A stretch of DNA of 64,000 nucleotides. It comes from Lytechinus pictus. Its lineage: Eukaryota. A program made the translations under genes and the position numbers. Shown piece by piece: positions 6,674-58,237 of the stretch. Location of the stretch: assembly GCF_037042905.1 (NCBI RefSeq), contig NC_087256.1, positions 4,278,001 to 4,342,000 on the forward strand, read 5' to 3'. The notes beneath the pieces were generated by a model, which was given only the letters and a program-made list of their open reading frames with translations, ran no database searches and had not been told where the DNA came from. How positions within the stretch are numbered: the stretch's first letter is position 1; every line of letters begins with the position of its first letter.

Positions 6674-6812
6674 NNNNNNNNNNNNNNNNNNNNNNNNNNN
6701 NNNNNNNNNNNNNNNNNNNNNNNNNNNNNNNNNNNNNNNNNNNNNNNNNNNNNNNNNNNNNNNNNNNNNNNNNNNNNNNNNNNNNNNNNNNNNNNNNNNN
6801 NNNNNNNNNNNN
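6674..6812. other. Assembly gap (139 N)
   Basis: Run of N flanked by trinucleotide-like low-complexity sequence. Confidence 0.99.
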
Positions 6813-18929: not shown

Positions 18930-20948
18930 ACGAGAGAGAAAGGGGGAATGGATGAAATAGAGTAGTGAATGGGAGATGGAGAGGGGGGGGGGGGGATAGA
19001 GGGAGGTAGAGAGAAAAGGTGATGAGAAGGGGAACACAAAAGTTATATTTTCTTTTGGAGGAAATAGAGTAATGAATATGGGAGAGGGGGGATGGATAGA
19101 GGATAGAAAGAGGGAGGGGGTAGAGAAGTTAAAAGAGGTATAGAGAAAAGGTGACGAGAAGGGGAACACAAAAGTTATATTTTCTAATGGAGGAAATAGA
19201 GTAATGAATGGGGGAGAGGGGGGATGGATAGGGAAGGAGAGAAAGAGGGAGGGGGTAGAGAAGTTGAAAGAGGTATAGAGAAAAGGGGATGAGAAGGGGA
19301 ACACAAAATTATATTTTCTTTTTGAGGAAATAGAGTAATGAATAGGGGAGAGGGGGGATGGATAGAGGAGAGAAAGAGGGAGGGGGTAGAGAAGTTGAAA
19401 GAGGTATAGAGAAAAGGGGATGAGAAGGGGAACACAAAATTATATTTTCTTTTGGAGGAAATAGAGTAATGAATAGGGGAGAGGGGGGGTGGATAGAGGA
19501 GAGAAAGAGGGAGGGGGTAGAGAAGTTGAAAGAGGTATAGAGAAAAGGGGATGAGAAGGGGAACACAAAATTATATTTTCTTTTGGAGGAAATAGAGTAA
19601 TGAATAGGGGAGAGGGGGGATGGATAGAGGAGAGAAAGAGGGAGGGGGTAGAGAAGTTGAAAGAGGTATAGAGAAAAGGGGATGAGAAGGGGAACACAAA
19701 ATTATATTTTCTTTTGGAGGAAATAGAGTAATGAATAGGGGAGAGGGGGGATGGATAGAGGAGAGAAAGAGGGAGGGGGTAGAGAAGTTGAAAGAGGTAT
19801 AGAGAAAAGGGGATGAGAAGGGGAACACAAAATTATATTTTCTTTTGGAGGAAATAGAGTAATGAATAGGGGAGAGGGGGGATGGATAGAGGAGAGAAAG
19901 AGGGAGGGGATAGAGAAGTTGAAAGAGGTATAGAGAAAAGGGGATGAGAAGGGGAACACAAAATTATATTTTCTTTTGGAGGAAATAGAGTAATGAATAG
20001 GGGAGAGGGGGGATGGATAGAGGAGAGAAAGAGGGAGGGGGTAGAGAAGTTGAAAGAGGTATAGAGAAAAGGGGATGAGAAGGGGAACACAAAATTATAT
20101 TTTCTTTTGGAGGAAATAGAGTAATGAATAGGGGAGAGGGGGGATGGATAGAGGAGAGAAAGAGGGAGGGGGTAGAGAAGTTGAAAGAGGTATAGAGAAA
20201 AGGGGATGAGAAGGGGAACACAAAATTATATTTTCTTTTGGAGGAAATAGAGTAATGAATAGGGGAGAGGGGGGATGGATAGAGGAGAGAAAGAGGGAGG
20301 GGGTAGAGAAGTTGAAAGAGGTATAGAGAAAAGGGGATGAGAAGGGGAACACAAAATTATATTTTCTTTTTGAGGAAATAGAGTAATGAATAGGGGAGAG
20401 GGGGGATGGATAGAGGAGAGAAAGAGGGAGGGGGTAGAGAAGTTGAAAGAGGTATAGAGAAAAGGGGATGAGAAGGGGAACACAAAATTATATTTTCTTT
20501 TGGAGGAAATAGAGTAATGAATAGGGGAGAGGGGGGTGGATAGAGGAGAGAAAGAGGGAGGGGGTAGAGAAGTTGAAAGAGGTATAGAGAAAAGGGGATG
20601 AGAAGGGGAACACAAAATTATATTTTCTTTTGGAGGAAATAGAGTAATGAATAGGGGAGAGGGGGGATGGATAGAGGAGAGAAAGAGGGAGGGGGTAGAG
20701 AAGTTGAAAGAGGTATAGAGAAAAGGGGATGAGAAGGGGAACACAAAATTATATTTTCTTTTGGAGGAAATAGAGTAATGAATAGGGGAGAGGGGGGATG
20801 GATAGAGGAGAGAAAGAGGGAGGGGGTAGAGAAGTTGAAAGAGGTATAGAGAAAAGGGGATGAGAAGGGGAACACAAAATTATATTTTCTTGTGGAGGAA
20901 ATAGAGTAATGAATAGGGGAGAGGGGGGATGGATAGAGGAGAGAAAGA
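18930..20948. repeat. 131-bp tandem repeat (satellite/minisatellite), ~15 copies, purine-rich + strand
   Basis: Unit GAGAAGGGGAACACAAAATTATATTTTCTTTTGGAGGAAATAGAGTAATGAATAGGGGAGAGGGGGGATGG...; repeated minus-strand ORFs are offset by 131 bp. Confidence 0.97.
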
Positions 20949-46546: not shown

Positions 46547-46776
46547 CTACATCCAGTCATAGAGAAGACCCATCTGTGCTAGACACACCTCAGTCACCAC
46601 ACTTGTCTCATCTGAAGAAGAATTGAGATGGTTTCTAAGTTGGTCTACATAGTCACCTATCTGGAGTAGACTGATTTGGTCATCATTGGATAGCTGTTTC
46701 CTGCACACAGATGACCAAAGCAACAAGGACTTGGAAAATGTTGACTTCTTACTTAGCTCATCCTTGGACTGACCTC
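46547..46776 (-). CDS. SIMC1: SIMC1-like last coding exon
   Basis: CT-rich tract + tag|(G)GQSKDELSKKSTFSKSLLLWSSVCRK...LYDWM-TAG; phase 1 matches the previous exon. Confidence 0.78.
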
Positions 46777-47794
46777 CTATACAACATATGGTGATAGGAA
46801 GACATAGTGAGAGGGAAGAGAGAGAGAGAGACAGAGACAGAGAGAGACAGAATGGGTGAGGGGTGGGGGAGAATGAGACAGACAGACAGAGAGAGATATA
46901 CAAAATGAAATTAATACCACAATCAATACCATTCCTGCAAGTTATTGCCTGTGCTTAATAAACTTCACAATTGGTAATAATAAGAAATTACCTCATCACA
47001 GACCTTTTCTGGGTGGTGATAAATACCAATTACTTAGTCAAAATCAATTATCAGAAGTGGTACTAAATGAATAAATAAACATGCTATCATAACCAAAAAA
47101 GAGAAATTAAAGGTGCAGGATATTTATCAATTTGATCACTAGATGTGGCAATTATCCAAAGTGAATATACCACTGATTGGATGAAAGCGTAAGTGTGGAG
47201 GCAAAGTAATTTTCCCGCCAAATCAATTATGAGGAATAATTGCTCGAATATATTTGCTTGTGATAAAATTAAATGCATATATATCTTTTCAGCTGCATCC
47301 ACTGCCAAGGTATGAAGGGGGAAATTACCTTCTTTCTCCTTTATCAAAAACAAGGAAACTTGATATTTTGCCAGATCAAGTTTTTCACATGGTCTCTTCA
47401 ATTCAATACAATATGAACATAGATATATGGATTCTGATTATTTCAAAGTCTCCATTTCTAAGTCTTTGTGCCACTTGTACATTTAATTCAATATGAGATT
47501 TTCTATAAACATAGCCTATTCATGCTCAGTGTCTTATGCTGTTTCTCACCTTTGCATGAGATGCGATCAAACCTTGAAAGCGATTACGGTAAGAAAAATC
47601 ATTCATTGGCACATTAACCTAGATAATGACATGATATAAGAAACTCCCATATGAAGCTACAGTTATACCACAAAACCAACTATTCAGTGATGAAATCTAT
47701 TATGTTATTTCCAATGGCGTATCATCCGTCTCTTTGGAGTCAGTCTGGTGTGACTGCAGTATAGAATCTAGGAGTGATCAGTGTGTGTACTCAC

Positions 47795-48071
47795 CACTAC
47801 AGCATTGGAGGTAACTCCGCAGCATGACAAGAAGCAGATAGGCCATCTCTTCTTTACTACTCTTACTGAATCTGGTCTCCATCACCTCATCTTCCATATC
47901 TCCCCCATTGTTCAAGTTTGAGGAGGGTGATTTTGGCAGGAAGAGGAAGTACTCCTCAACGATTCTTGTGATGGAGATGTTCTCTCTTGGCTGACTGAAG
48001 ATATTGGATTCAAATCGCTTGTTGAAGATCAGTTCGCTGAGCTTGAGTCTCAGCCATGGCTGCTGGAGTGT
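47795..48071 (-). CDS. SIMC1: SIMC1-like exon
   Basis: aacag|TLQQPWLRLKLSELIF...EEMAYLLLVMLRSYLQCCS(G)|gtgagt, open and in phase with both neighbours. Confidence 0.82.
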
Positions 48072-48710
48072 CTGTTAACAGTTCACAAACAAACACAAAG
48101 AAAATAGAAATACCCACATGACATCAGGTTCTCTGTAATAAGGGTTGCCTTTAATCCATTCTTATGTGACCATATCATAATTATTTTATTCAGACAAAAA
48201 CTTGTATTCATCCAATACAGTTACAAGGATATAAGACTAATCAAACAGCTCAAGGAACAAACTGCTCAAATGTACATGTACATTACATTAATCTTAATCA
48301 ACAACATTCAACTTGGTGAATAATGTACATATGAGCAAACTTTGGTTGTTGACCAAGCATCTATATTCAACATTATTTCTCACAAGAAAGGTTGCAAGTA
48401 CACTTGAATCATAAAAAAGATGCTTGCAAATGCTTTATACCATATACATGTATGACCTAAAGACAAACTTTGAACTTGGCATTTGATTTTTGAAACCACT
48501 ATCACACTGAGGTACTCCCAATTCAACTACATGTACATGTATGTGCAAATTTTTGTTATTTAAAGTGACAGTCATGAAATGATAAGTCACAAGAGAGAAA
48601 CCCCTTCATCTTTGGTGGGCACGACAAAAAATACAAATGTGTAACATGAATGAATTTAAAATTTGATTTGCATTCTCTATAAATGTATAAATATCAAATG
48701 GTCAAATTAC

Positions 48711-50543
48711 CTCAAAGAGGAGTCTCAGCTGTGGCAGTCCTTTGAGATCGCAGCTTTTCAGTTCCTCAACAGTCCTCTGTAAATGTGTTTTTAAGGTCCA
48801 AGAGTCTGCCATTCTGAAGCTTAATTCCAAGAGCTTCCCAAGTAGAGGAAGGAGATAACTCACATGGCAAGTACTTTCTGGACATCGACAGCTAAGGACT
48901 GTTGACCTGAATGTAGACGCACTGCACCCAGGTGAAGGTTCCAATTCAGAAACTACCTTATGGATCCACCTGACAACTTCTTGACAATTGTTCCTACAAG
49001 TGTCCGGATTGAGGATTGAGAAGGCATAGGACTTCTTCAGTGTGTTCCACCTTGCCTTGCGCTCTAGATCATCCTCAAGAATGGACACAAGGTAGTGTAG
49101 AGACAGCAGGTCTATGTGCCAACTATTGACAGCTAAAACACTATCATTTAGATCACCGTTTGATGGTACACTGACTAGCGCCGTTGCGACAGTTCTGACG
49201 AGATCCCACTCAATGGGAAAATCCCTTGCATTTGGATGATGTAGCTGCTGTATCTTTTTGAGGCACCTGTACACTATCAAAGCTTCTGCATTACTTTTGC
49301 CCTTTCTTAAGGTCTCATGGAAGAGTTCTTGAAGAAGATGCGGTGGTGGTTTATGGTTTATTGTTGTGAACTTTTCTATCAAGTTTAGTGCTGCCTGCGT
49401 GAATTCCTCCTCATGACAGGCATTTACTGCATTGCATTTATCATCACTAAAGGGCTTAGTTCTCTTATGCATGTGTTTATATTTTCTTACAGAAAGATCA
49501 CTGGCTTTTGTATCCTCTGGAGCTAACAAGAAAGATCCCCAGCAGGCATCTGTTACTTGTTCCTCATTTTCAGCCACTTCTCCTGAAGAATGTCTTGATC
49601 GATCATCATCTGAAACGGATAAAGGTTGTACTGGTAGCGGTGCTCTTTCAGGGGAAGGTACATGTTCTCTCTTGACAGGTCTTTGCTCAGTTGCTTCATG
49701 ACTCTCCACAGTCTGTGTATTCAAATACAGCTCATTGGCATTGCTGGATGTCGGCACAGTTGTGTATAAAGGTACCACTTCCTCAAGTATCGGATACTCC
49801 GGTAAGTCGCTGGAATCTGATTGTTCAGCATCGTCATCACCATCATCTTGAATTCTAAAATGATCTGAGCCATTGCTCACTGACACTCCATGGGTAAGAT
49901 TTGCTTGTTCACAAACGATCGCATCATCACAGTCAATCTCTGAATCTGAATAGTGTTCATGACCAGCATGATGATCAGACAAATCACTCATAGAGTCAAC
50001 GGGGATAGGCTGGAGATCTTTCTGCAAACTTGCATTATTTTGATCCAAATCAGAATCTAAACAAATCACATCAGAGTCGCTCGAGTTGAGCTTCGGCGAC
50101 CTCCTAGTTCTCTCATTTGTACCATCATTGTCTCCAGAGCTGTCGGATATGGTGTAAATCTCCTCATTTTGGGGAGAACTACATGCAGACGTTGTCCTCC
50201 TTTCCTTGAGAGTAGGCACATCTGTAAACTCATCATCTGAAATTGCCTCATAATCCGATGACAGTGACATTTTCTTTTTCCGCTTGACTGGAATACTGTC
50301 CTCTCTGTTGATGAGGGAAGGATGAATCAGTGCACTTATGTTGAAATTCACATTGACAGGAATCAAGCCACTACTCATGAGGCTGTTCCTACTTGCCATC
50401 AATGCCATGTCACTTGTTGTTGAGTGTTGATGAGTCTTTTTGTAAGTTCTCATGCTCTCCTGATCAAGGGATTTCATTCTCTGGATGGGTCTCTTATGCC
50501 GGTGCCTACGTTTCTTTGATGACCTGAAGGTCACAGCTCCCTC
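48711..50543 (-). CDS. SIMC1: SUMO-interacting motif-containing protein 1 (SIMC1/C5orf25, Nse5-like) orthologue, large internal exon (611 codons); 5' exon(s) not found in window
   Basis: ttccag| acceptor and |gtaatt donor. Acidic disordered region with SIM-like motifs (EIYTISDS, DVICLDSD), then EEEF..ALNLIEKF..PP..VYRCLKKIQQLHHPNA..LHYLVSILEDD..NCQEVVRWI, which resembles the SIMC1 C-terminal domain (recognised from memory, not searched). Confidence 0.82.
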
Positions 50544-51317: not shown

Positions 51318-53054
51318 CTATATTTCATTAAGTAATTGTTTTTTACAGAGTTTTTTAAATCTAGATAAAGTAGTACTTTCCTGGATTGAGTTATGTAAAT
51401 TATTCCAATATTTGATACCATTGTAGGAAAGAGATATTAATGACGAGGTTAAACGTAATTTGGGAAGATGAAATTGATTTTTCTGGCGAGTTGAATAGGA
51501 ATGGACATTATAATTATGAATGAATATATTGCAAAATTTTAGAGGAAACATTTTGTTTTTGATTAGATACATAAATATTAATGAATTGAGAATAGTCATT
51601 TTCTGAATAGGCAAAATATTTAGTTCTTTAAATAAAGGGGTAGAGCTCGAGTTAATATTAGATTTAGTAATAACTCTTACTGATTTCTTTTGTAAAATAT
51701 GTAATTTGCCCAGGTGGGATGTATATGTATTCCCCCAGATATGATTACAATAATTGATATATGGATGAACAATAGCATAATAAATAATTTTCAACACATT
51801 ACAAGGTAGTACAAATTTTAATTTTCGTAGAATACCAGCACCCCTAGCTATAGATTTAGATATTACAGATATATGTGGAGTCCAATCAAGATATTCATTA
51901 ATTATAACACCTAAAAATTTTACATCATGTAATTGTGAGATTGGAACACCATCAATTAATAATTGAGGTAGTGTTTGTGGTACCCTTCTCTTTCTTGTTC
52001 TAAATAATAGATAATTAGTCTTATTTAGATTCAAGGCTAGTTTGTTAGCCTTGAACCATAAGGACACATTTGAGATTTCCCTGTTTGCTGATGAGTAAAG
52101 TGTATGTAAATTTTTTTGACTAATCGTTGCTACAGTGTCGTCAGCAAACAGGGAAAATTTGAAATAAACAGAAGAATGGATGATATCATTTATGTAAACA
52201 AGAAAGAGAAGGGGACCAAGAACAGAGCCTTGAGGAATTCTGTGCTCTATATTCTTTACAGATGATTTTACACCATCGACCACCACATATTGTTTTCTAT
52301 TGTTTAGGTAACTTGCAAACCAGTTATATGCTATTCCTCTGATTCCATAATGTTCAAGTTTTTTTAACAAGATGTGATGGTCGATGGTGTCAAAGGCCTT
52401 TGATAAGTCCATGAAAAATCCAATAGAGTAATTAGATTTTTCCATTTCCTGTTGAATACAATGAGATAAATTGAAAATAGCTAAATCAGTTGAAAATTGC
52501 TTACGAAAGCCAAATTGTTCATCTATTAATATATCATTACTTTGCAAAAATTTATAAAGACGACAATAAATTACTTTTTCAATAATCTTTGAAAAAAAAG
52601 GAAGAATTGCAATGGGTCGATAATTTGACATATCACTTGAATCTCCTTTCTTATAAATGGGTACTATTTTAGAAAGTTTGATTTTATCAGGCACTTCTCC
52701 ACAACATAATGATCTATTGATAATATAACATTGAGGTTCTGCAATATAGTGAATAGAAGACTTAACAACCCTTGATGATATCTCATCTGGCCCTGTGGAC
52801 TTAGATAGTCGAATATTTGAAGTAATTCTAATGATTTCATATACGGATGTAGGATTCATAAAAAGTGAATTAAGTGTTCTATTCACTGGTAAATAATCAT
52901 AAAAAGACTTATCTGTATGAATGCTTTCCGCAATGTTTTTTCCGATCGATAAGAAATAATTATTGAATTCTTCAATGATATCTTTTTTGGAATGTAATTT
53001 CATATTTCCATTATACATAACTGAGGGAAGTTTTTTATGTTTAGTGTTTCCTAA
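51318..53054 (-). pseudogene. LINE ORF2 reverse transcriptase and C-terminal domain
   Basis: Motifs NYRPIAIL, QFGFRK, DLSKAFDTIDH, PQGSVLGPLLF, LFADD, KFLGV and YWNNL. Confidence 0.92.
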
Positions 53055-53644
53055 TGTAACAGGTCAAAATGAACTGTTTAATGGAAATTCATATATTTTC
53101 ATAACTCTTAATCATTTGTCTGTAAGTGATAGACACCTTCACAGGAAGTGCACAGGAAGTAGTAGAAAGTAGAAATATTTAACAATCTTCATGCTTTTGA
53201 GGAAGTATGATTCACACTCTTTCTGGGTAAGAGTGATGCTGAATGGTCTTTGGGTCAAAACATCACATTCCAGAGCTATGAGCTTGCATGACGTAGATAA
53301 TTATGGTCAAGGCTTAGCATCTGTGAATGGAGAGTGATAACTGCATAAAAAGGAGAGAGGATTTTGCTCCAATTCACTCCTGCACTGCACCCCATTCATG
53401 GGGCAGGCAGAGAGGCTTCTTCATTTTCGGGTCAGAATTAAAGGTATTTGACATGACATTCGTGTAGCGGGTGAGGCTCTCACCAGAGGAAATATGGTCC
53501 TCTAGGCCAGATTGTCAGGGTTTTTTCTATCTTGTGTTCTTGTACTTGGAATTTTGTATGTAACGATCCATCGATATTAAACGAACCGAAACACAAGGAA
53601 TGGTGTCGTGTGTCATCTTTCTACATCAGTTTCCGCGTGTTACA
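53055..53644 (+). repeat. 5' LTR (590 bp), intron-less form
   Basis: Identical to 55302-55690 + 56163-56238 + 56600-56725 except for 2 substitutions and one T in a homopolymer. Confidence 0.93.
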
Positions 53645-53646
53645 AG

Positions 53647-53666
53647 TGGCGTAGTCAGCAGGATCG
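53647..53666 (+). promoter_or_regulatory. Primer-binding site complementary to tRNA-Ser 3' end
   Basis: TGGCGTAGTCAGCAGGAT lies 2 nt after the 5' LTR and is the reverse complement of the eukaryotic tRNA-Ser(AGA/TGA-type) 3' end ATCCTGCCGACTACG-CCA with 1 mismatch. Confidence 0.8.
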
Positions 53667-55288
53667 ATGTTCATCGTTGGATACAACCAAGTTCAAACCC
53701 TGGCAATCTGAGGAGCTCATCCGTCTCATCTGTTGGACATCTTGAATTTTGTAAATATGAACGTAGCTTTAAGTTTAAGATGTATTGTGTGTGTGCATTG
53801 TGTGAATGCTGTAGCCGAAATGTAGTTTGTTTTAAAATAATATGAGGCTACAATGTATTTGATAGGGATTAATACTAATGGAAAGGTATTTTATGAGATA
53901 CCCTGTAAGAGTTTTCAGATCAAAAAGCTTTGGTCAAGGGAACACTGAGCACTGTTCAAGGTTCATTTTTGTGTTGTCATGGTAATGCTGTGTTTTGGAA
54001 CAGTCCATGCCCCCTTTCTTATGTAATTTTGGCTGGTTGGATGGGAACCACACATTGGGGTGTTGGAAGCTAGAGACACCAGTATTTTATATGTTGATAG
54101 GAGGGAGTACAGTATGTGCAGATTAAGCTCTGGGTTTGGCAAACATGATTAACTTGTGAATAGTTGAGGCGTTTCTTTGTCTGATACGTGAAGTTTGTTA
54201 ACTTTTTAAGTTTAGTTTTGGGTCTTGATTAATATTCGGTTTAATAAGTTATGGCGTGAATTAATGTTAATTGTTTGATCCAGAATGTGTATTTAATAGT
54301 TTTAGGGGCTACTTTTGAAAAAGTAGGGGAGCCCACGTCTTGATGAAAGTGGTTTACTTTTATGTTTATGTGTGTTATAGGTTATTATATTGTAATATGC
54401 TGATCTTTCTGATTTGTAACTGGGATTTGGCTAGGAGTACTGCTAGGTTTAGTCATGATAAAGTATCAATGTAAATTTCGAGAACCTCAATCTGAGACCG
54501 GGATTGCATTAGAGGGATACTGGAGTGACTATTTGGGCAGTAAAGTTTTTCTCTTTACCTTTGTTTTTCTGTTTACCTTCGAGGCCGGAAAGGACACATT
54601 GGTAGTTGAGTGAATTAGTCAAAAGTTATAAGATTTTTCAGTATGTTATATTGATGAACTATTGTTCCATTGGAAATTGCTAAGATTTGGGGAAACATCT
54701 GGTAATTGTTGTTATTTGTTTATTGCCTTGTAATTTTGCCTTACAGTTTGAATCAGCTGTAAGTATAAGTAGGTATATTTTGGGAGTTTTAAGGATGACA
54801 TTATAGTGATCTATTTACTGGTTATAAAGTATATAATGGTTTGTTATTCATTGAAGTACATGGATTGTGAAGGTTAATGTCGGTAACTAAACATTGGTTG
54901 GTATAAACTTTGGAGCTGTTAGGATCGGTTAGGAAGCACTTGGAATGTTAATGCTAGAAGCCTCAACATGAGACCAGTATTACATAATAAGGAGTGTAGT
55001 TGAAAACTGAAACAGTTAAGTTTTTGCACTAGATATGTCTTCTGTGTTTATTCTCGTCATGAGACCAGAAAGTTCGTATTAGTGGTGCGGGTTCGCCAAT
55101 ACCGAGTTATTGCTGAGATTTTCATATTCTGTATCGGGTGATTACTGGCTTTATATCTTAATGTCATGATTAATTGTAAATTGATTTGTTTTGTAACTGG
55201 GAACAAGCATCACCGGGTAGTGTTATTTAAAGTAGGACTTTAATTTGTAATAATTTTGGTATAGTGAGTGCCGGGACGTCACTCAATT

Positions 55289-55301
55289 AAGTAGGGGAGT
55301 A
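55289..55301 (+). promoter_or_regulatory. Polypurine tract of LTR element
   Basis: AAGTAGGGGAGTA immediately before the 3' LTR TGT. Confidence 0.8.
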
Positions 55302-56725
55302 TGTAACAGGTCAAAATGAACTGTTTAATGGAAATTCATATATTTTCATAACTCTTAATCATTTGTCTGTAAGTGATAGACGCCTTCACAGGAAGTGCAC
55401 AGGAAGTAGTAGAAAGTAGAAATATTTAACAATCTTCATGCTTTTGAGGAAGTATGATTCACACTCTTTCTGGGTAAGAGTGATGCTGAATGGTCTTTGG
55501 GTCAAAACATCACATTCCAGAGCTATGAGCTTGCATGACGTAGATAATTATGGTCAAGGCTTAGCATCTGTGAATGGAGAGTGATAACTGCATAAAAAGG
55601 AGAGAGGATTTTGCTCCAATTCACTCCTGCACTGCACCCCATTCATGGGGCAGGCAGAGAGGCTTCTTCATTTTCGGGTCAGAATTAAAGGTAAGAAAAT
55701 TATCTTATTTTGTCGATTCTGTTAGTTTTGAACAATAGTTTATAAAGTTGGTTCGCAATGCATTTTCTATTGTTTTAAATAATATGTTAGGTTATATTAA
55801 AGAGCTATCTTTGCTAGCATAGCATGTTATCTGTCTTATTTTAAAGGGGTTTGTAAATTAAATAATTCATTAGTTATGCATCTGTCTTCGTTACTTCAGA
55901 TTATTCTTATGTCATTTTGTTATATTTTGTATAATTACTTGTACGTATATACTTGATTGTAGTATGTAGTTATAAAACAGAATGTGTTCGGTTCTAATCT
56001 TATAGTGAAACAATTTAGTAAAATGATCTTTAGAGTGAAAGATTTTGGTTAAATTGATTTGGTTATTGAATTGTTAATTCAATGTTTCAGTTAAGTGTTT
56101 TCAGAGTAAAGGGTCACGATGATTACTTACTACGTGTAATAATTGTTACTTTCCTTTTAAAGGTATTTGACATGACATTCGTGTAGCGGGTGAGGCTCTC
56201 ACCAGAGGAAATATGGTCCTCTAGGCCAGATTGTCAGGGTGAGTGGTTATCATTCATTAACCACTGTATTTCAATGTTAATTTGTTGGCATATTCTAATT
56301 GTTGTTTGGTAAATTTCACTTGATGGATGTATTTCATTTATTTGTTGGAAGAGTTATCCATAACGATGGAGGAACTGAATTTGTGATTAGATGAGTTGAA
56401 TTCAGGCAATATTGATTAGGTTTTAATGAATGGGTATAGACAACATGTTTATCATTTATTATTACGAGTCTACTTGACGTCATATTGATGAATGTTTTGT
56501 CTTGGAGTCACAGACAAATATGTGTATATTTCTATTTTGTGCATTTTTCAAACATATCATAATTCTATTTAATTGTTTTGTTCTTGTTGGTTTTTGCAGG
56601 TTTTTTTCTATCTTGTGTTCTTGTACTTGGAATTTTGTATGTAACGATCCATCGATATTAAACGAACCGAAACACAAGGAATGGTGTCGTGTGTCATCTT
56701 TCTACATCAGTGTCCGCGTGTTACA
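55302..56725 (+). repeat. 3' LTR (1424 bp) containing two GT-AG introns (55691-56162, 56239-56599)
   Basis: AAG|GTAAGA...TTCCTTTTAAAG|GT and AGG|GTGAGT...TTTTTGCAG|G; the flanks match the 5' LTR. Confidence 0.92.
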
Positions 56726-58237
56726 CTAAAATACGGTTAATTTCACCCCAGACCTTTTTGGTATCAGTTTTGATTATAGAAAAGAGGGATGAATAATAAT
56801 CTGATTTTGCTATACGAAGTAATTGTACTAAGTTATTTTTATATTGTTTGTATTTTCTTTCATTTGCATTTGATGGAGTTTTCAGATATTTTTTCCAAAG
56901 TCTTTGCTTCTTGTTAATAGATTGTAATAAAGTTGTTGTTATCCAGGGTTTTTTACGAATAAATTTTGTATTTGGTTTTGATTTTATTATGGGAAAGCAT
57001 TCATTATAAAGTGAATAAAAGATTTGCAAAAATTTATTATAACAAATATTTACATCATCAGCATAATACATTAAAGACCAGTCAACCTCTTGTAATTTAG
57101 ATTTAAACTTTGATAGTTGATTATTATTAGTTAATCGTCTAAATGTACATGAGATGTTATTTAAAGATTTTAATTTGTAATTTTTCTTCAGACAAAAAAC
57201 TGGAAAATGATCTGATATATCAGCAATAAGCAACCCAGAATCAAAACTACTATCCAAGCAATTGCAAAAAATATTATCAATTAAGGTTGCACAAGTAGGA
57301 GTAATTCTTGAAGGTTTCGAAATCAATGGATATATTAAATTAAAAGAAAACATTGATTCTAAAAAATCATTTGTTTTTTCGTGTGAATCTATGTTTAATA
57401 AATTTATATTAAAGTCACCATTATGAAAATATCAGAATTCTGATTATTTATTTTTTCTAGTAAACTGTTTAATTTATCTAGGAATACGTCAATGTTTGAA
57501 CCTGGGACTCTATAAATACATCCTATAATAATTCTCTTTTTTTCGTAAGTCTGGAGCTCAATGAATAATGCTTGAAATTCAGACGTATTGTTTGAAATGT
57601 CAGACCTTATTATGTAATCAAATTTATTGTCTATATAAATCCCAACTCCACCACCTCTTTTACTTTCCCTATTAATCTGAACAAAATTGTATCCCTCAAT
57701 ATGGTACATGTTACTATTTTTCTTTTCACTGAGCCATGTTTCTGTTATACCTATTGCAGTAAATATTCTCCCAGAAGAATTTAAAAGCGTATGAATATCA
57801 TCAAAATTTTTGGGCAAACTTCGTGCATTGAGGTGGATAAGACTTAGGGAATCGTCGTTTGGGATTTCTTGTAACTCGTCAGTAAAGAAATATTTGCAAT
57901 GAGTTGGTTTATAAAAATTACCCCCAGTTTGGATGTCACAAAATATATTATCATTATCAAAGATGTCATCAATATCATTTAAACAAAAAGGATTAATTTT
58001 CATATGTTTTAATCTTTCCATATTGACGCCCTGGTTTAAGGAGAAAAAACTTAATAAGTTTAATTTAAAATCATCGTCATCCTCACAATGGTTAAAAGGA
58101 AATATATTGATACATTGAGTACATAAAGAGTTTGAAATAGGATCAGTGCACCTAAAAGAACAACCACATATACCACACACACACTGCATAATCACTAAAC
58201 ACTTCCAAAATGGCAATTGAATATAACATACACTCAC
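56726..58237 (-). pseudogene. LINE ORF2 N-terminal part: Cys-rich leader + apurinic-like endonuclease
   Basis: Motifs HLNARSL, GITETWL, RGGGVGIY, CIYR.P, GDFN (broken by a 1-nt frameshift near 57418), TLIDNIF and ISDHFPVF. Confidence 0.88.

Follow-up and report, generated by a model that had tools for sequence, protein, structure and literature searches.

In reverse-transcriptase-mediated intron loss, a spliced RNA copy recombines with the genomic copy, and introns are removed precisely and simultaneously. Work on such intron loss and on the conversion of LTRs has usually dealt with host genes, or with LTRs that differ by point changes, and not with introns that lie inside an LTR. Non-allelic conversion between LTRs is described as common (PMC4921805, PMC7251063). 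For particles that carry two different RNAs, the first or the second strand transfer is described as intermolecular, and it has been proposed that an intermolecular second-strand transfer gives LTRs that are unlike for one generation (PMC5651808). In maize it has been reported that LTR retrotransposons give rise to spliced transcripts contained within the LTR, which are made up of three exons, the middle one short (bioRxiv 10.64898/2026.05.08.723830). One sea urchin, S. purpuratus, has been reported to have introners, which are transposons that create introns on insertion (PMC12130899), and elements such as the ta-TRIM of cestodes are known to give rise to cis-spliced non-coding transcripts driven by the LTR (PMC4558846).

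Here we describe, at one locus of the sea urchin Lytechinus, an LTR retrotransposon of 3671 bp in total (53055-56725) whose 3' LTR contains two intron-like segments, I1 and I2, that are absent from its 5' LTR. All positions are those of the window, that is, of the whole 64-kb stretch of DNA that was analyzed. The asymmetric LTR pair is unusual and suggests that the two ends may derive from spliced and unspliced RNA copies. What the locus shares with the maize case is the position of the introns within the LTR between its own start and poly(A) site, both of which are predicted here, the division into three exons of which the middle one is short, and the canonical junctions. The maize case differs in that it is based on RNA, comes from a plant and has much longer introns, with a mean length of 1303 bp, whereas the sea urchin case is based on DNA only and comes from an echinoderm; neither intron-less DNA copies nor LTR asymmetry within one element are described in the maize report. 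The likeness to retroviral proviruses made from two RNAs is that the LTRs of one new insertion would come from different templates, but that system is HIV-1 with point polymorphisms as markers, whereas the markers here are two introns in a non-coding element, read from the genome sequence alone. The intermolecular plus-strand transfer that the original prediction had proposed for this locus does have a precedent in that work (PMC5651808).

The element and its insertion site

The element lies on the plus strand within a LINE-like retrotransposon of the opposite strand, and its features and those of its surroundings are as follows.

46550..50543, minus strand: three exons of the SIMC1-like neighbouring host gene, antisense to the element
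51318..58237, minus strand: host LINE-like non-LTR retrotransposon with a reverse-transcriptase domain
53051..53054, no strand: left target-site duplication CTAA, from the sequence
53055..53644, plus strand: 5' LTR, 590 bp, intron-less form, from repeat search, blastn and global alignment
53140..53175 (55387-55422 in the 3' LTR), plus strand: tandem U3 motifs, CACAGGAAGTG twice and AGTAGAA twice, putatively enhancer-like
53343..53353 (55590-55600 in the 3' LTR), plus strand: TATA-like GCATAAAAAGG, promoter predicted from the motif
53576..53581 (56657-56662 in the 3' LTR), plus strand: ATTAAA, poly(A) signal predicted from the motif, which would close R
53645..55301, plus strand: internal region, 1657 bp, non-coding by ORF scan, Pfam and Rfam
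53647..53664, plus strand: PBS-like site beginning with TGG, 2 nt past the 5' LTR, from the sequence
55289..55299, plus strand: polypurine tract-like AAGTAGGGGAG, 2 nt upstream of the 3' LTR, from the sequence
55302..56725, plus strand: 3' LTR, 1424 bp, the form holding both I1 and I2, from repeat search, blastn and alignment
56726..56729, no strand: right target-site duplication CTAA, from the sequence

The host LINE is interrupted by one nested insertion, which is the LTR element, and by at least one further break of its reading frame. Stop-free LINE frames extend up to the LTR on either side and agree in phase, the element together with the duplication being 3675 bp or 3 x 1225. Because of these in-phase frames and of the CTAA duplication on either side, whose length falls in the 4-6 bp range of target-site duplications, the element is taken to be an LTR retroelement that arrived by one insertion, as had been claimed. 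The adjacency of the LINE pieces is read only from phase and duplication, since the upstream LINE pieces gave no PDB match and the empty-site test found no second LINE copy within the 64-kb window. It had also been stated that the strand of the element is antisense both to the LINE and to a neighbouring SIMC1 gene, and this holds, the gene being indeed SIMC1-like; its intron bounds were taken from tblastn and are inexact.

Both LTRs have the ends TGTAACA...TGTTACA, that is, the TG..CA ends with short terminal inverted repeats that characterize the LTR order, and a polypurine tract-like site adjoins the 3' LTR. The PBS-like site next to the 5' LTR is a candidate for pairing with a tRNA 3' end, and tRNA-Ser had been put forward as the putative primer. 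No tRNA gene was found within the 64-kb window. Coding sequence for gag or pol (protease, reverse transcriptase, RNase H, integrase), by which an autonomous LTR retrotransposon or ERV is recognized, is absent from the element. When the element was scanned, its longest ORF was 81 aa and its longest stop-free frame 93 codons, and neither a Pfam nor an Rfam match was obtained anywhere in it. The internal region contains a weak duplication (54440-54606 against 54916-55086). With a rate taken over from another invertebrate the element is dated to roughly 0.6 My, and on the best reading it is a young, non-autonomous LTR retrotransposon that presumably depends on the proteins of a partner.

The element is like TRIM and LARD elements in having LTRs, PBS-like and PPT-like sites, a target-site duplication and no coding capacity, but the size definitions of both fit it poorly, as its interior is 1.66 kb and its LTRs are 590 and 1424 bp. 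TRIMs are defined by very short LTRs of about 100-250 bp and a total length under about 1 kb, and assignment to that class was rejected on the size of the LTRs and of the whole element. Identity with BHIKHARI of zebrafish was dropped, since BHIKHARI-1 has a 617-aa Gag and the element here comes from a sea urchin.

Other copies of the family were sought at the level of DNA and of protein. None was found by blastn of the element against the 64-kb window or by exact-pattern scans of viral contigs and metagenome contigs. The 81-aa ORF had no exact match in a protein look-up, and word-index protein searches with the ORF spanning U5 and the PBS and with the frame running from I2 through exon 3 into U5 gave no family relative. 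An exhaustive search of representative proteins with the frame that crosses the spliced junction returned only two weak multi-stretch matches, both to unrelated long proteins.

The two LTRs and the segments that distinguish them

The segments of the 3' LTR around which the comparison turns are these.

55691..56162, plus strand: I1, intron-like, 472 bp, 26% GC, GTAAGA...pyrimidine tract...AAG, from alignment and motifs
56163..56238, plus strand: middle 'exon' of the 3' LTR, 76 bp, 50% GC, 100% identical to 53447-53522
56239..56599, plus strand: I2, intron-like, 361 bp, 29% GC, GTGAGT...TTGTTCTTGTTGGTTTTTGCAG, from alignment and motifs

Apart from three small differences, the 5' LTR is equal to the 3' LTR from which I1 and I2 have been taken out, and the junctions in the 5' LTR that match the absent segments are at 53446|53447 and 53522|53523. 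Repeat search and blastn gave three collinear matches, in which 53055-53446 corresponds to 55302-55693, 53438-53521 to 56157-56240 (100%), and 53512-53644 to 56594-56725. As a test of the splice model, the 5' LTR was globally aligned with the three segments of the 3' LTR joined without I1 and I2. The differences are A/G at 53135/55382, which is a CpG site in U3, T/G at 53631/56712, and T6 versus T7 adjoining the I2 junction. The LTR coordinates, the segment lengths and the count of two substitutions and one homopolymer T agreed exactly with those given before. Two of the three differences are in R-U5 and the remaining one is the CpG transition in U3. This pattern is not significant, although it is compatible with unlike templates for R-U5 of the two LTRs.

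It is improbable that the LTRs are truly alike and that one of them was assembled or polished wrongly with reads of another copy of the family. The two repeats are 99.5% identical and only 2.2 kb apart, the T6 versus T7 difference is a typical homopolymer error, and sea urchin genomes have high heterozygosity (PMC9557091), all of which would favour such an artefact. Against it, the assembly has no gap in or near the element, the only N run being 46 kb away, the sequence is continuous with the hallmarks intact at both ends, and an artefact of this kind would still need intron-less LTR copies in the genome.

I1 starts at AAG|GTAAGA and ends at TTTCCTTTTAAAG|G, and I2 starts at AGG|GTGAGT and ends at GGTTTTTGCAG|G. 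Ahead of the AG, 13 of 16 nucleotides are pyrimidines in I1 and 12 of 16 in I2; a branch-like CTTAC is about 33 nt from the end of I1 and a branch-like TTAAT about 28 nt from that of I2. Thus, both segments have the extended donor, pyrimidine tract, AG and branch-like motif of U2-type introns on the sense strand of the element, and their GC content of 26-29% compares with 38-50% in the flanking parts of the LTR. The background rates in the window were 3.2e-4 per position for G|GTRAG and 1.5e-3 for a pyrimidine tract (at least 11/16) followed by NAG|G, from which the joint chance of the splice-like boundaries of both segments is about 9e-12, a rough estimate in which all boundary placements were allowed. 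The alignment and these statistics bear out the claim that the extra segments resemble spliceosomal introns on the element's own strand, and the best reading is that they are real introns of the LTR with a putative use in RNA. The 5' LTR, in which they are missing, is an indirect sign of their removal.

Both segments follow the TATA-like box and precede the ATTAAA signal, and because of this they fall in the predicted R. Transcription would start about 25-30 bp downstream of the TATA-like box. There is also an earlier ATTAAA at 53437 in the 5' LTR and 55684 in the 3' LTR, 4 nt upstream of the I1 donor. The position of both segments in the predicted R had gone without mention in the original prediction.

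A perfect 9-bp repeat, TTAAAGGTA, flanks I1 at 55685-55693 and 56157-56165 and contains AG|GT; for a random segment, a junction repeat of at least 9 bp has a P of about 2e-4. At the I2 junction the microhomology is 3-4 bp (CAGG or GGT). With such repeats the segments might have been deleted without splicing, by a slip of reverse transcriptase or of cellular replication from one short direct repeat to the other, and synthesis of plus-strand strong-stop DNA, the errors of which reach the 5' LTR only, would be a possible setting. With the CAGG alignment the difference at the I2 junction becomes one substitution in place of an indel. In foamy viruses, LTR deletions in U3 have been ascribed to direct repeats, and as the text ascribes them so, their use as a precedent for splicing was found to be unsupported and was rejected. 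Deletion is nevertheless extremely improbable, as it needs two independent events in one LTR, the repeat at I2 is very short, and both events would have to coincide with donors, pyrimidine tract and AG, AT-rich bodies and the sense strand, with a joint chance of about 1e-11.

The repeat at I1 had been noted before as a microhomology for deletion. The repeat is there, but what was overlooked is that it contains AG|GT, which is a signature of a transposon-born intron, and, together with the report of introners in sea urchin, this allows the opposite polarity, namely that the 590-bp form is the original one and the 3' LTR alone was hit by two introner insertions whose target duplications supplied the splice sites. 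In this respect I1 is introner-like, as it is bounded by two copies of a direct repeat that holds AG|GT, and splicing from one copy to the other would restore the pre-insertion sequence exactly, and the introners reported in S. purpuratus were recently active. Unlike introners, I1 and I2 showed no similarity to each other, and their target is an LTR and not a host gene. No TIRs were found in I1 or I2, the best terminal inverted matches being 10/14 (P = 0.08) for I1 and 6/14 (P = 0.96) for I2, and neither has an A/T tail or a hairpin fold (fold z-scores of -1.3 and -1.4) or a further, dispersed copy within the 64-kb window. Gain would require two independent insertions of unrelated sequences, 76 bp apart and both in sense orientation, in one target of 590 bp and in the short life of the element, while the other LTR and the internal region received none. 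The I2 junction repeat that would be the trace of the second one is only 3 bp and is within the ordinary splice consensus, and a transposon origin of I1 in some ancestor of the family would account for the 9-bp repeat just as well. We therefore regard gain in the 3' LTR as quite improbable.

Two templates or a later exchange

Our leading explanation, which we hold tentatively and at a little short of even chances, is that the LTR has real introns and that the 5' LTR, and not the 3' LTR, passed through a spliced RNA in a reverse transcription that used two templates. The LTR would have two genuine U2-type introns around a 76-bp exon in the transcribed R, and the RNA carries R at both of its ends. 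The 3' LTR would retain both introns, and the 5' LTR would be the reverse-transcribed copy of the fully spliced form. Two templates would be needed for the insertion, because the canonical two-jump pathway on one RNA gives two identical LTRs, a point on which we agree with the original prediction. The most likely setting would be a single particle with two RNAs, of which one was spliced in its 5' R and the other was unspliced. By intermolecular strand transfer the spliced template would then give the 5' LTR, and the unspliced template the 3' LTR. This may have happened in one of two ways: either the plus-strand strong-stop DNA was synthesized on the second template, or minus-strand synthesis copied the acceptor RNA across its 5' end, which was spliced and intact, and the heteroduplex was resolved later. 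The absence of both segments together is what one spliced RNA predicts and it lends support to this explanation, and the lack of TIRs, tails, hairpin, mutual similarity and other copies in the window was counted in its favour as well. Counted against it are the perfect 9-bp repeat at I1, which splicing alone does not predict, the T6 versus T7 difference exactly at the I2 junction, which is one extra change, and the fact that it is seen at a single locus.

Also counted against it is that recombination after integration yields the same end product. In that case the 5' LTR of an intron-bearing copy would have been replaced by homologous recombination or gene conversion, the donor being either an LTR without introns at another genomic site or cDNA made from the spliced RNA, and the start being either two intron-bearing LTRs or a solo LTR. 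A variant of this is a single crossover, within the 389-bp homology of U3 and exon 1, by which a one-LTR circle of the spliced form joins an unspliced solo LTR already in place; it would yield exactly a spliced 5' LTR and an unspliced 3' LTR with the duplication kept. Recombination thus accounts for a structure identical to the one observed, with the duplication and flanks preserved; the longest unbroken stretch of homology precedes I1, in favour of the polarity that is seen, and non-allelic gene conversion of LTRs has been reported to be extensive in humans and plants (PMC4921805, PMC7251063). What speaks against it is that the donor must have been near-identical, given just 2 substitutions over the 590 bp, that the element is young and there was little time, and that no intron-less family copy that could have been the donor turned up in the searches given above. 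Taken as a whole, recombination after integration is possible but doubtful. When only the two routes to the 5' LTR are set against each other, two-template reverse transcription and recombination at a later time with a copy or cDNA that lacks the introns are about equally likely.

If two templates were used, a further question is whether the family does this as a matter of course. It is unlikely, though worth stating, that introns embedded in R are regular in this family and that the copy records co-packaged, differently spliced RNAs, one for each LTR. In its strongest form this would mean that the family systematically retains an intron-less 5' LTR together with an intron-bearing 3' LTR. A rule of that kind, by which a non-canonical cycle regularly makes or keeps such copies, is very improbable, and nothing speaks for it directly: introns in R at the two ends of the RNA could be spliced independently, and intron sequence at one end could in principle aid packaging, but the canonical pathway, which is the established model, turns an asymmetric parent into symmetric progeny, and a second copy of the element was not seen in the searches given above.

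Meaning for LTR pairs

That the two LTRs are identical at birth is the assumption behind the dating of insertions, and what is known about which template gives rise to which LTR comes mainly from engineered markers in retroviruses. Introns in the transcribed repeat of an LTR are a built-in marker that is either wholly present or wholly absent. On the best reading, one spliced and one unspliced LTR in a single insertion mean that reverse transcription acts on spliced RNA of this family, and that a common template or history of both LTRs cannot be taken for granted in an insertion. If the copy stands alone, it is a rare outcome of processes already known, and its main value is as a warning where LTRs are dated or annotated. 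If it is recurrent, the very recent report on LTR introns in maize would be extended beyond plants to animals and beyond RNA to heritable DNA, and the frequencies of strand transfer or of conversion would be readable straight from genome sequence. Should introns in R prove to be regular in the family, censuses of intron-marked LTR pairs could gauge intermolecular versus intramolecular strand transfer in the wild.

Structure and insertion of the element

The element is an LTR retrotransposon of 3671 bp whose 3' LTR contains two intron-like segments, I1 and I2, that are absent from its 5' LTR.

Features of the element and its surroundings (window positions)
53055-53644: 5' LTR, 590 bp, from repeat match and global alignment
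55302-56725: 3' LTR, 1424 bp, from repeat match and global alignment
55691-56162: I1, first intron-like segment, 472 bp, 26% GC
56239-56599: I2, second intron-like segment, 361 bp, 29% GC
53140-53175 and 55387-55422: U3 tandem motifs in both LTRs, CACAGGAAGTG twice and then AGTAGAA twice
51318-58237, minus strand: LINE (non-LTR retrotransposon), RVT_1 domain present; best PDB relatives LINE-1 ORF2p and R2
46550-50543, minus strand: three exons of a SIMC1-like host gene, from protein matches
6674-6812: run of Ns, 139 bases, the only one in the window

Repeat search and blastn gave three collinear blocks common to both LTRs. When the 5' LTR was aligned globally with the 3' LTR blocks 55302-55690, 56163-56238, and 56600-56725 taken together, the LTRs differed beyond I1 and I2 by 2 substitutions (A at 53135 vs G at 55382, a CpG site, and T at 53631 vs G at 56712) and by one T in a T-run, and the LTR structure and coordinates of the original prediction are thereby confirmed. 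The LTR distance is 0.0034 and the age of the element is roughly 0.6 My, with a rate borrowed from another invertebrate. All of this evidence comes from one assembled locus, and misassembly could be invoked for the unlike LTRs, but the closest gap is 46 kb off and we regard this as decidedly unlikely.

The LTR termini are TGTAACA...TGTTACA, a PBS-like site initiated by TGG begins 2 nt past the 5' LTR, and the polypurine tract AAGTAGGGGAG stops 2 nt short of the 3' LTR. In the 1657-bp interior there is no ORF longer than 81 aa and no stop-free frame longer than 93 codons, and Pfam and Rfam searches of it gave no match; the element is a non-autonomous LTR retrotransposon. This non-coding interior also has a weak duplication (54440-54606 vs 54916-55086, 63% over ~170 bp) and an 18-bp tandem repeat (54545-54579). 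The U3 tandem motifs are repeats with a GGAA core, such as occur in enhancers.

CTAA is duplicated at both flanks of the element, stop-free LINE frames extend in one phase as far as the edge of each LTR, and the element and one copy of the duplication add up to 3675 bases (3 x 1225). The in-phase frames and the duplication indicate, as had been predicted, a single insertion into continuous sequence and not a two-locus recombinant. The LINE is interrupted by the element nested inside it and has at least one further break of its frame, and its long stop-free frames suggest that it was itself young when hit. The assignment of the neighboring gene to SIMC1 also held, since the product of a 631-aa ORF on the minus strand, 2.5 kb from the element, matches the structure of SUMO-interacting motif-containing protein 1 (7T5P chain A, E = 5e-11). 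An L. pictus protein shares 98% identity with this ORF and an S. purpuratus protein 57%; for the exons the values are 97.5-99% and 58-71%, respectively. The host is a Lytechinus sea urchin. The exons differ from the L. pictus protein at 15 of 613 residues, which, from sequence comparison, suggests a different haplotype or individual, or a sister species. The window does not contain the initial ~21 residues of the SIMC1-like protein, and the LINE and the LTR element may sit either within intron 1 or in the 5' flank. Both the LINE and the SIMC1-like gene run antisense to the sense strand of the element, as the prediction stated, and therefore host splicing cannot explain the missing segments. 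Elsewhere in the window, a 172-aa ORF (20226-20744, minus strand) has a weak DUF7652 match that is under the Pfam cut-off (E = 0.0017, 19 vs 27 bits).

Character and position of I1 and I2

The GC content of I1 and I2 is 26% and 29% compared to 38-50% in the surrounding LTR parts. The donor of I1 is AAG/GTAAGA and its acceptor has 13/16 pyrimidines followed by AAG/G, while the donor of I2 is AGG/GTGAGT and its acceptor has 12/16 pyrimidines followed by CAG/G; branch-like motifs are present ~33 nt and ~28 nt, respectively, upstream of the acceptors. From donor and acceptor context frequencies in the window, with all boundary placements permitted by the junction repeats allowed, the joint chance of both segments showing splice contexts on the sense strand of the element is roughly estimated to be of the order of 1e-11, which bears out their predicted intron-like ends. 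Slippage between direct repeats, with no splicing, has retroviral precedent but needs two independent deletions, both mimicking introns, and is extremely unlikely.

The original prediction had also named transposons as what these segments might be instead, and most of what was found does not favor them. Whichever permitted boundary was taken, neither segment had terminal inverted repeats (best 10/14, P = 0.08, for I1 and 6/14, P = 0.96, for I2), and there were no A or T tails, no end-to-end hairpin (fold z = -1.3 and -1.4), and no similarity of I1 and I2 to each other, to the element interior, or to the rest of the 64-kb window. What does point towards a transposon is a perfect 9-bp direct repeat, TTAAAGGTA, which flanks I1 and contains AG/GT; for random window segments a junction repeat as long as these 9 bp has P of about 2e-4. 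I1 thus resembles a transposon-born intron, because splicing from one copy of the duplication to the other regenerates the exact target sequence, and the sea urchin S. purpuratus is reported to have recently active introners, transposons that create an intron on insertion (PMC12130899). One of two readings of this repeat is that I1 was transposon-born in an ancestral member of the family and has since become an ordinary LTR intron. The repeat and the introners would also favor the 590-bp LTR being the original and the 3' LTR having acquired I1 and I2 after integration. This, however, needs two independent hits by unrelated sequences, 76 bp apart and both in sense orientation, in one 590-bp target within the short life of the element copy, with the other LTR and the interior left without any hit, and is quite improbable.

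R is the LTR part that is present at both ends of the genomic RNA. TATA-like GCATAAAAAGG at 53343 and ATTAAA at 53576 flank both junctions, and if these two are used then I1 and I2 would be within R. An earlier ATTAAA is found 4 nt upstream of the I1 donor (within 53437-53446 and 55684-55720), followed in the intron-bearing LTR by a T/GT-rich stretch; were it the poly(A) signal, I1 and I2 would be in U5 instead, so the choice of signal decides their placement. Polyadenylation and use of the splice donor may be in competition at the start of I1. With the PBS included, the predicted spliced leader (53375-53700) has a more stable fold than shuffled sequences (z = -2.5, 1/100 shuffles as good) and may form a structured 5' leader.

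Possible origins of the unlike LTRs

In the canonical reverse transcription pathway, both LTRs descend from one minus-strand copy of U3-R-U5. Following this pathway through led to the outcome that the prediction had stated, namely that the LTRs made from a single template are identical (pathway summarised in PMC5651808). This is so whether I1 and I2 are in R or in U5 and, therefore, an asymmetric copy calls for a second template or for some later event. When the routes at the reverse transcription stage, after integration, and family-wide are taken together, R-U5 of the 5' LTR probably passed through a fully spliced RNA and that of the 3' LTR did not. A tentative explanation, which we hold to be quite possible but short of probable, is that two-template reverse transcription joined the spliced and unspliced forms in the element. 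One particle would hold one spliced and one unspliced RNA, and an intermolecular strand transfer would also have to occur. Intermolecular transfer has been proposed for HIV-1 particles with two different RNAs, and the LTRs of the resulting provirus would be unlike for one generation (PMC5651808).

It is possible, but somewhat unlikely, that the element recombined or underwent gene conversion after integration, the partner being an intron-less copy or a cDNA made from spliced RNA. The product would be identical to that seen, and LTR-LTR conversion is described as extensive in two reports (PMC4921805, PMC7251063). The observed polarity would result from one crossover upstream of I1, within the 389-bp homology, if a spliced one-LTR circle recombined with an unspliced solo LTR already resident there. 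Nothing observed supports a family-wide non-canonical cycle, which is very improbable; an asymmetric parent would yield symmetric progeny.

Relation to known systems

A 2026 maize preprint reports abundant spliced LTR-contained transcripts, typically of three exons with a short middle one, and its authors claim the first evidence of introns in LTRs (bioRxiv 10.64898/2026.05.08.723830). Unlike the present case, neither intron-less DNA copies nor unlike LTRs are described there. Non-exhaustive word searches of open-access text did not turn up any description of an LTR element in which one LTR is spliced and the other unspliced. The element type and every candidate process are already known; it is their combination as a heritable DNA footprint that appears to be undescribed.
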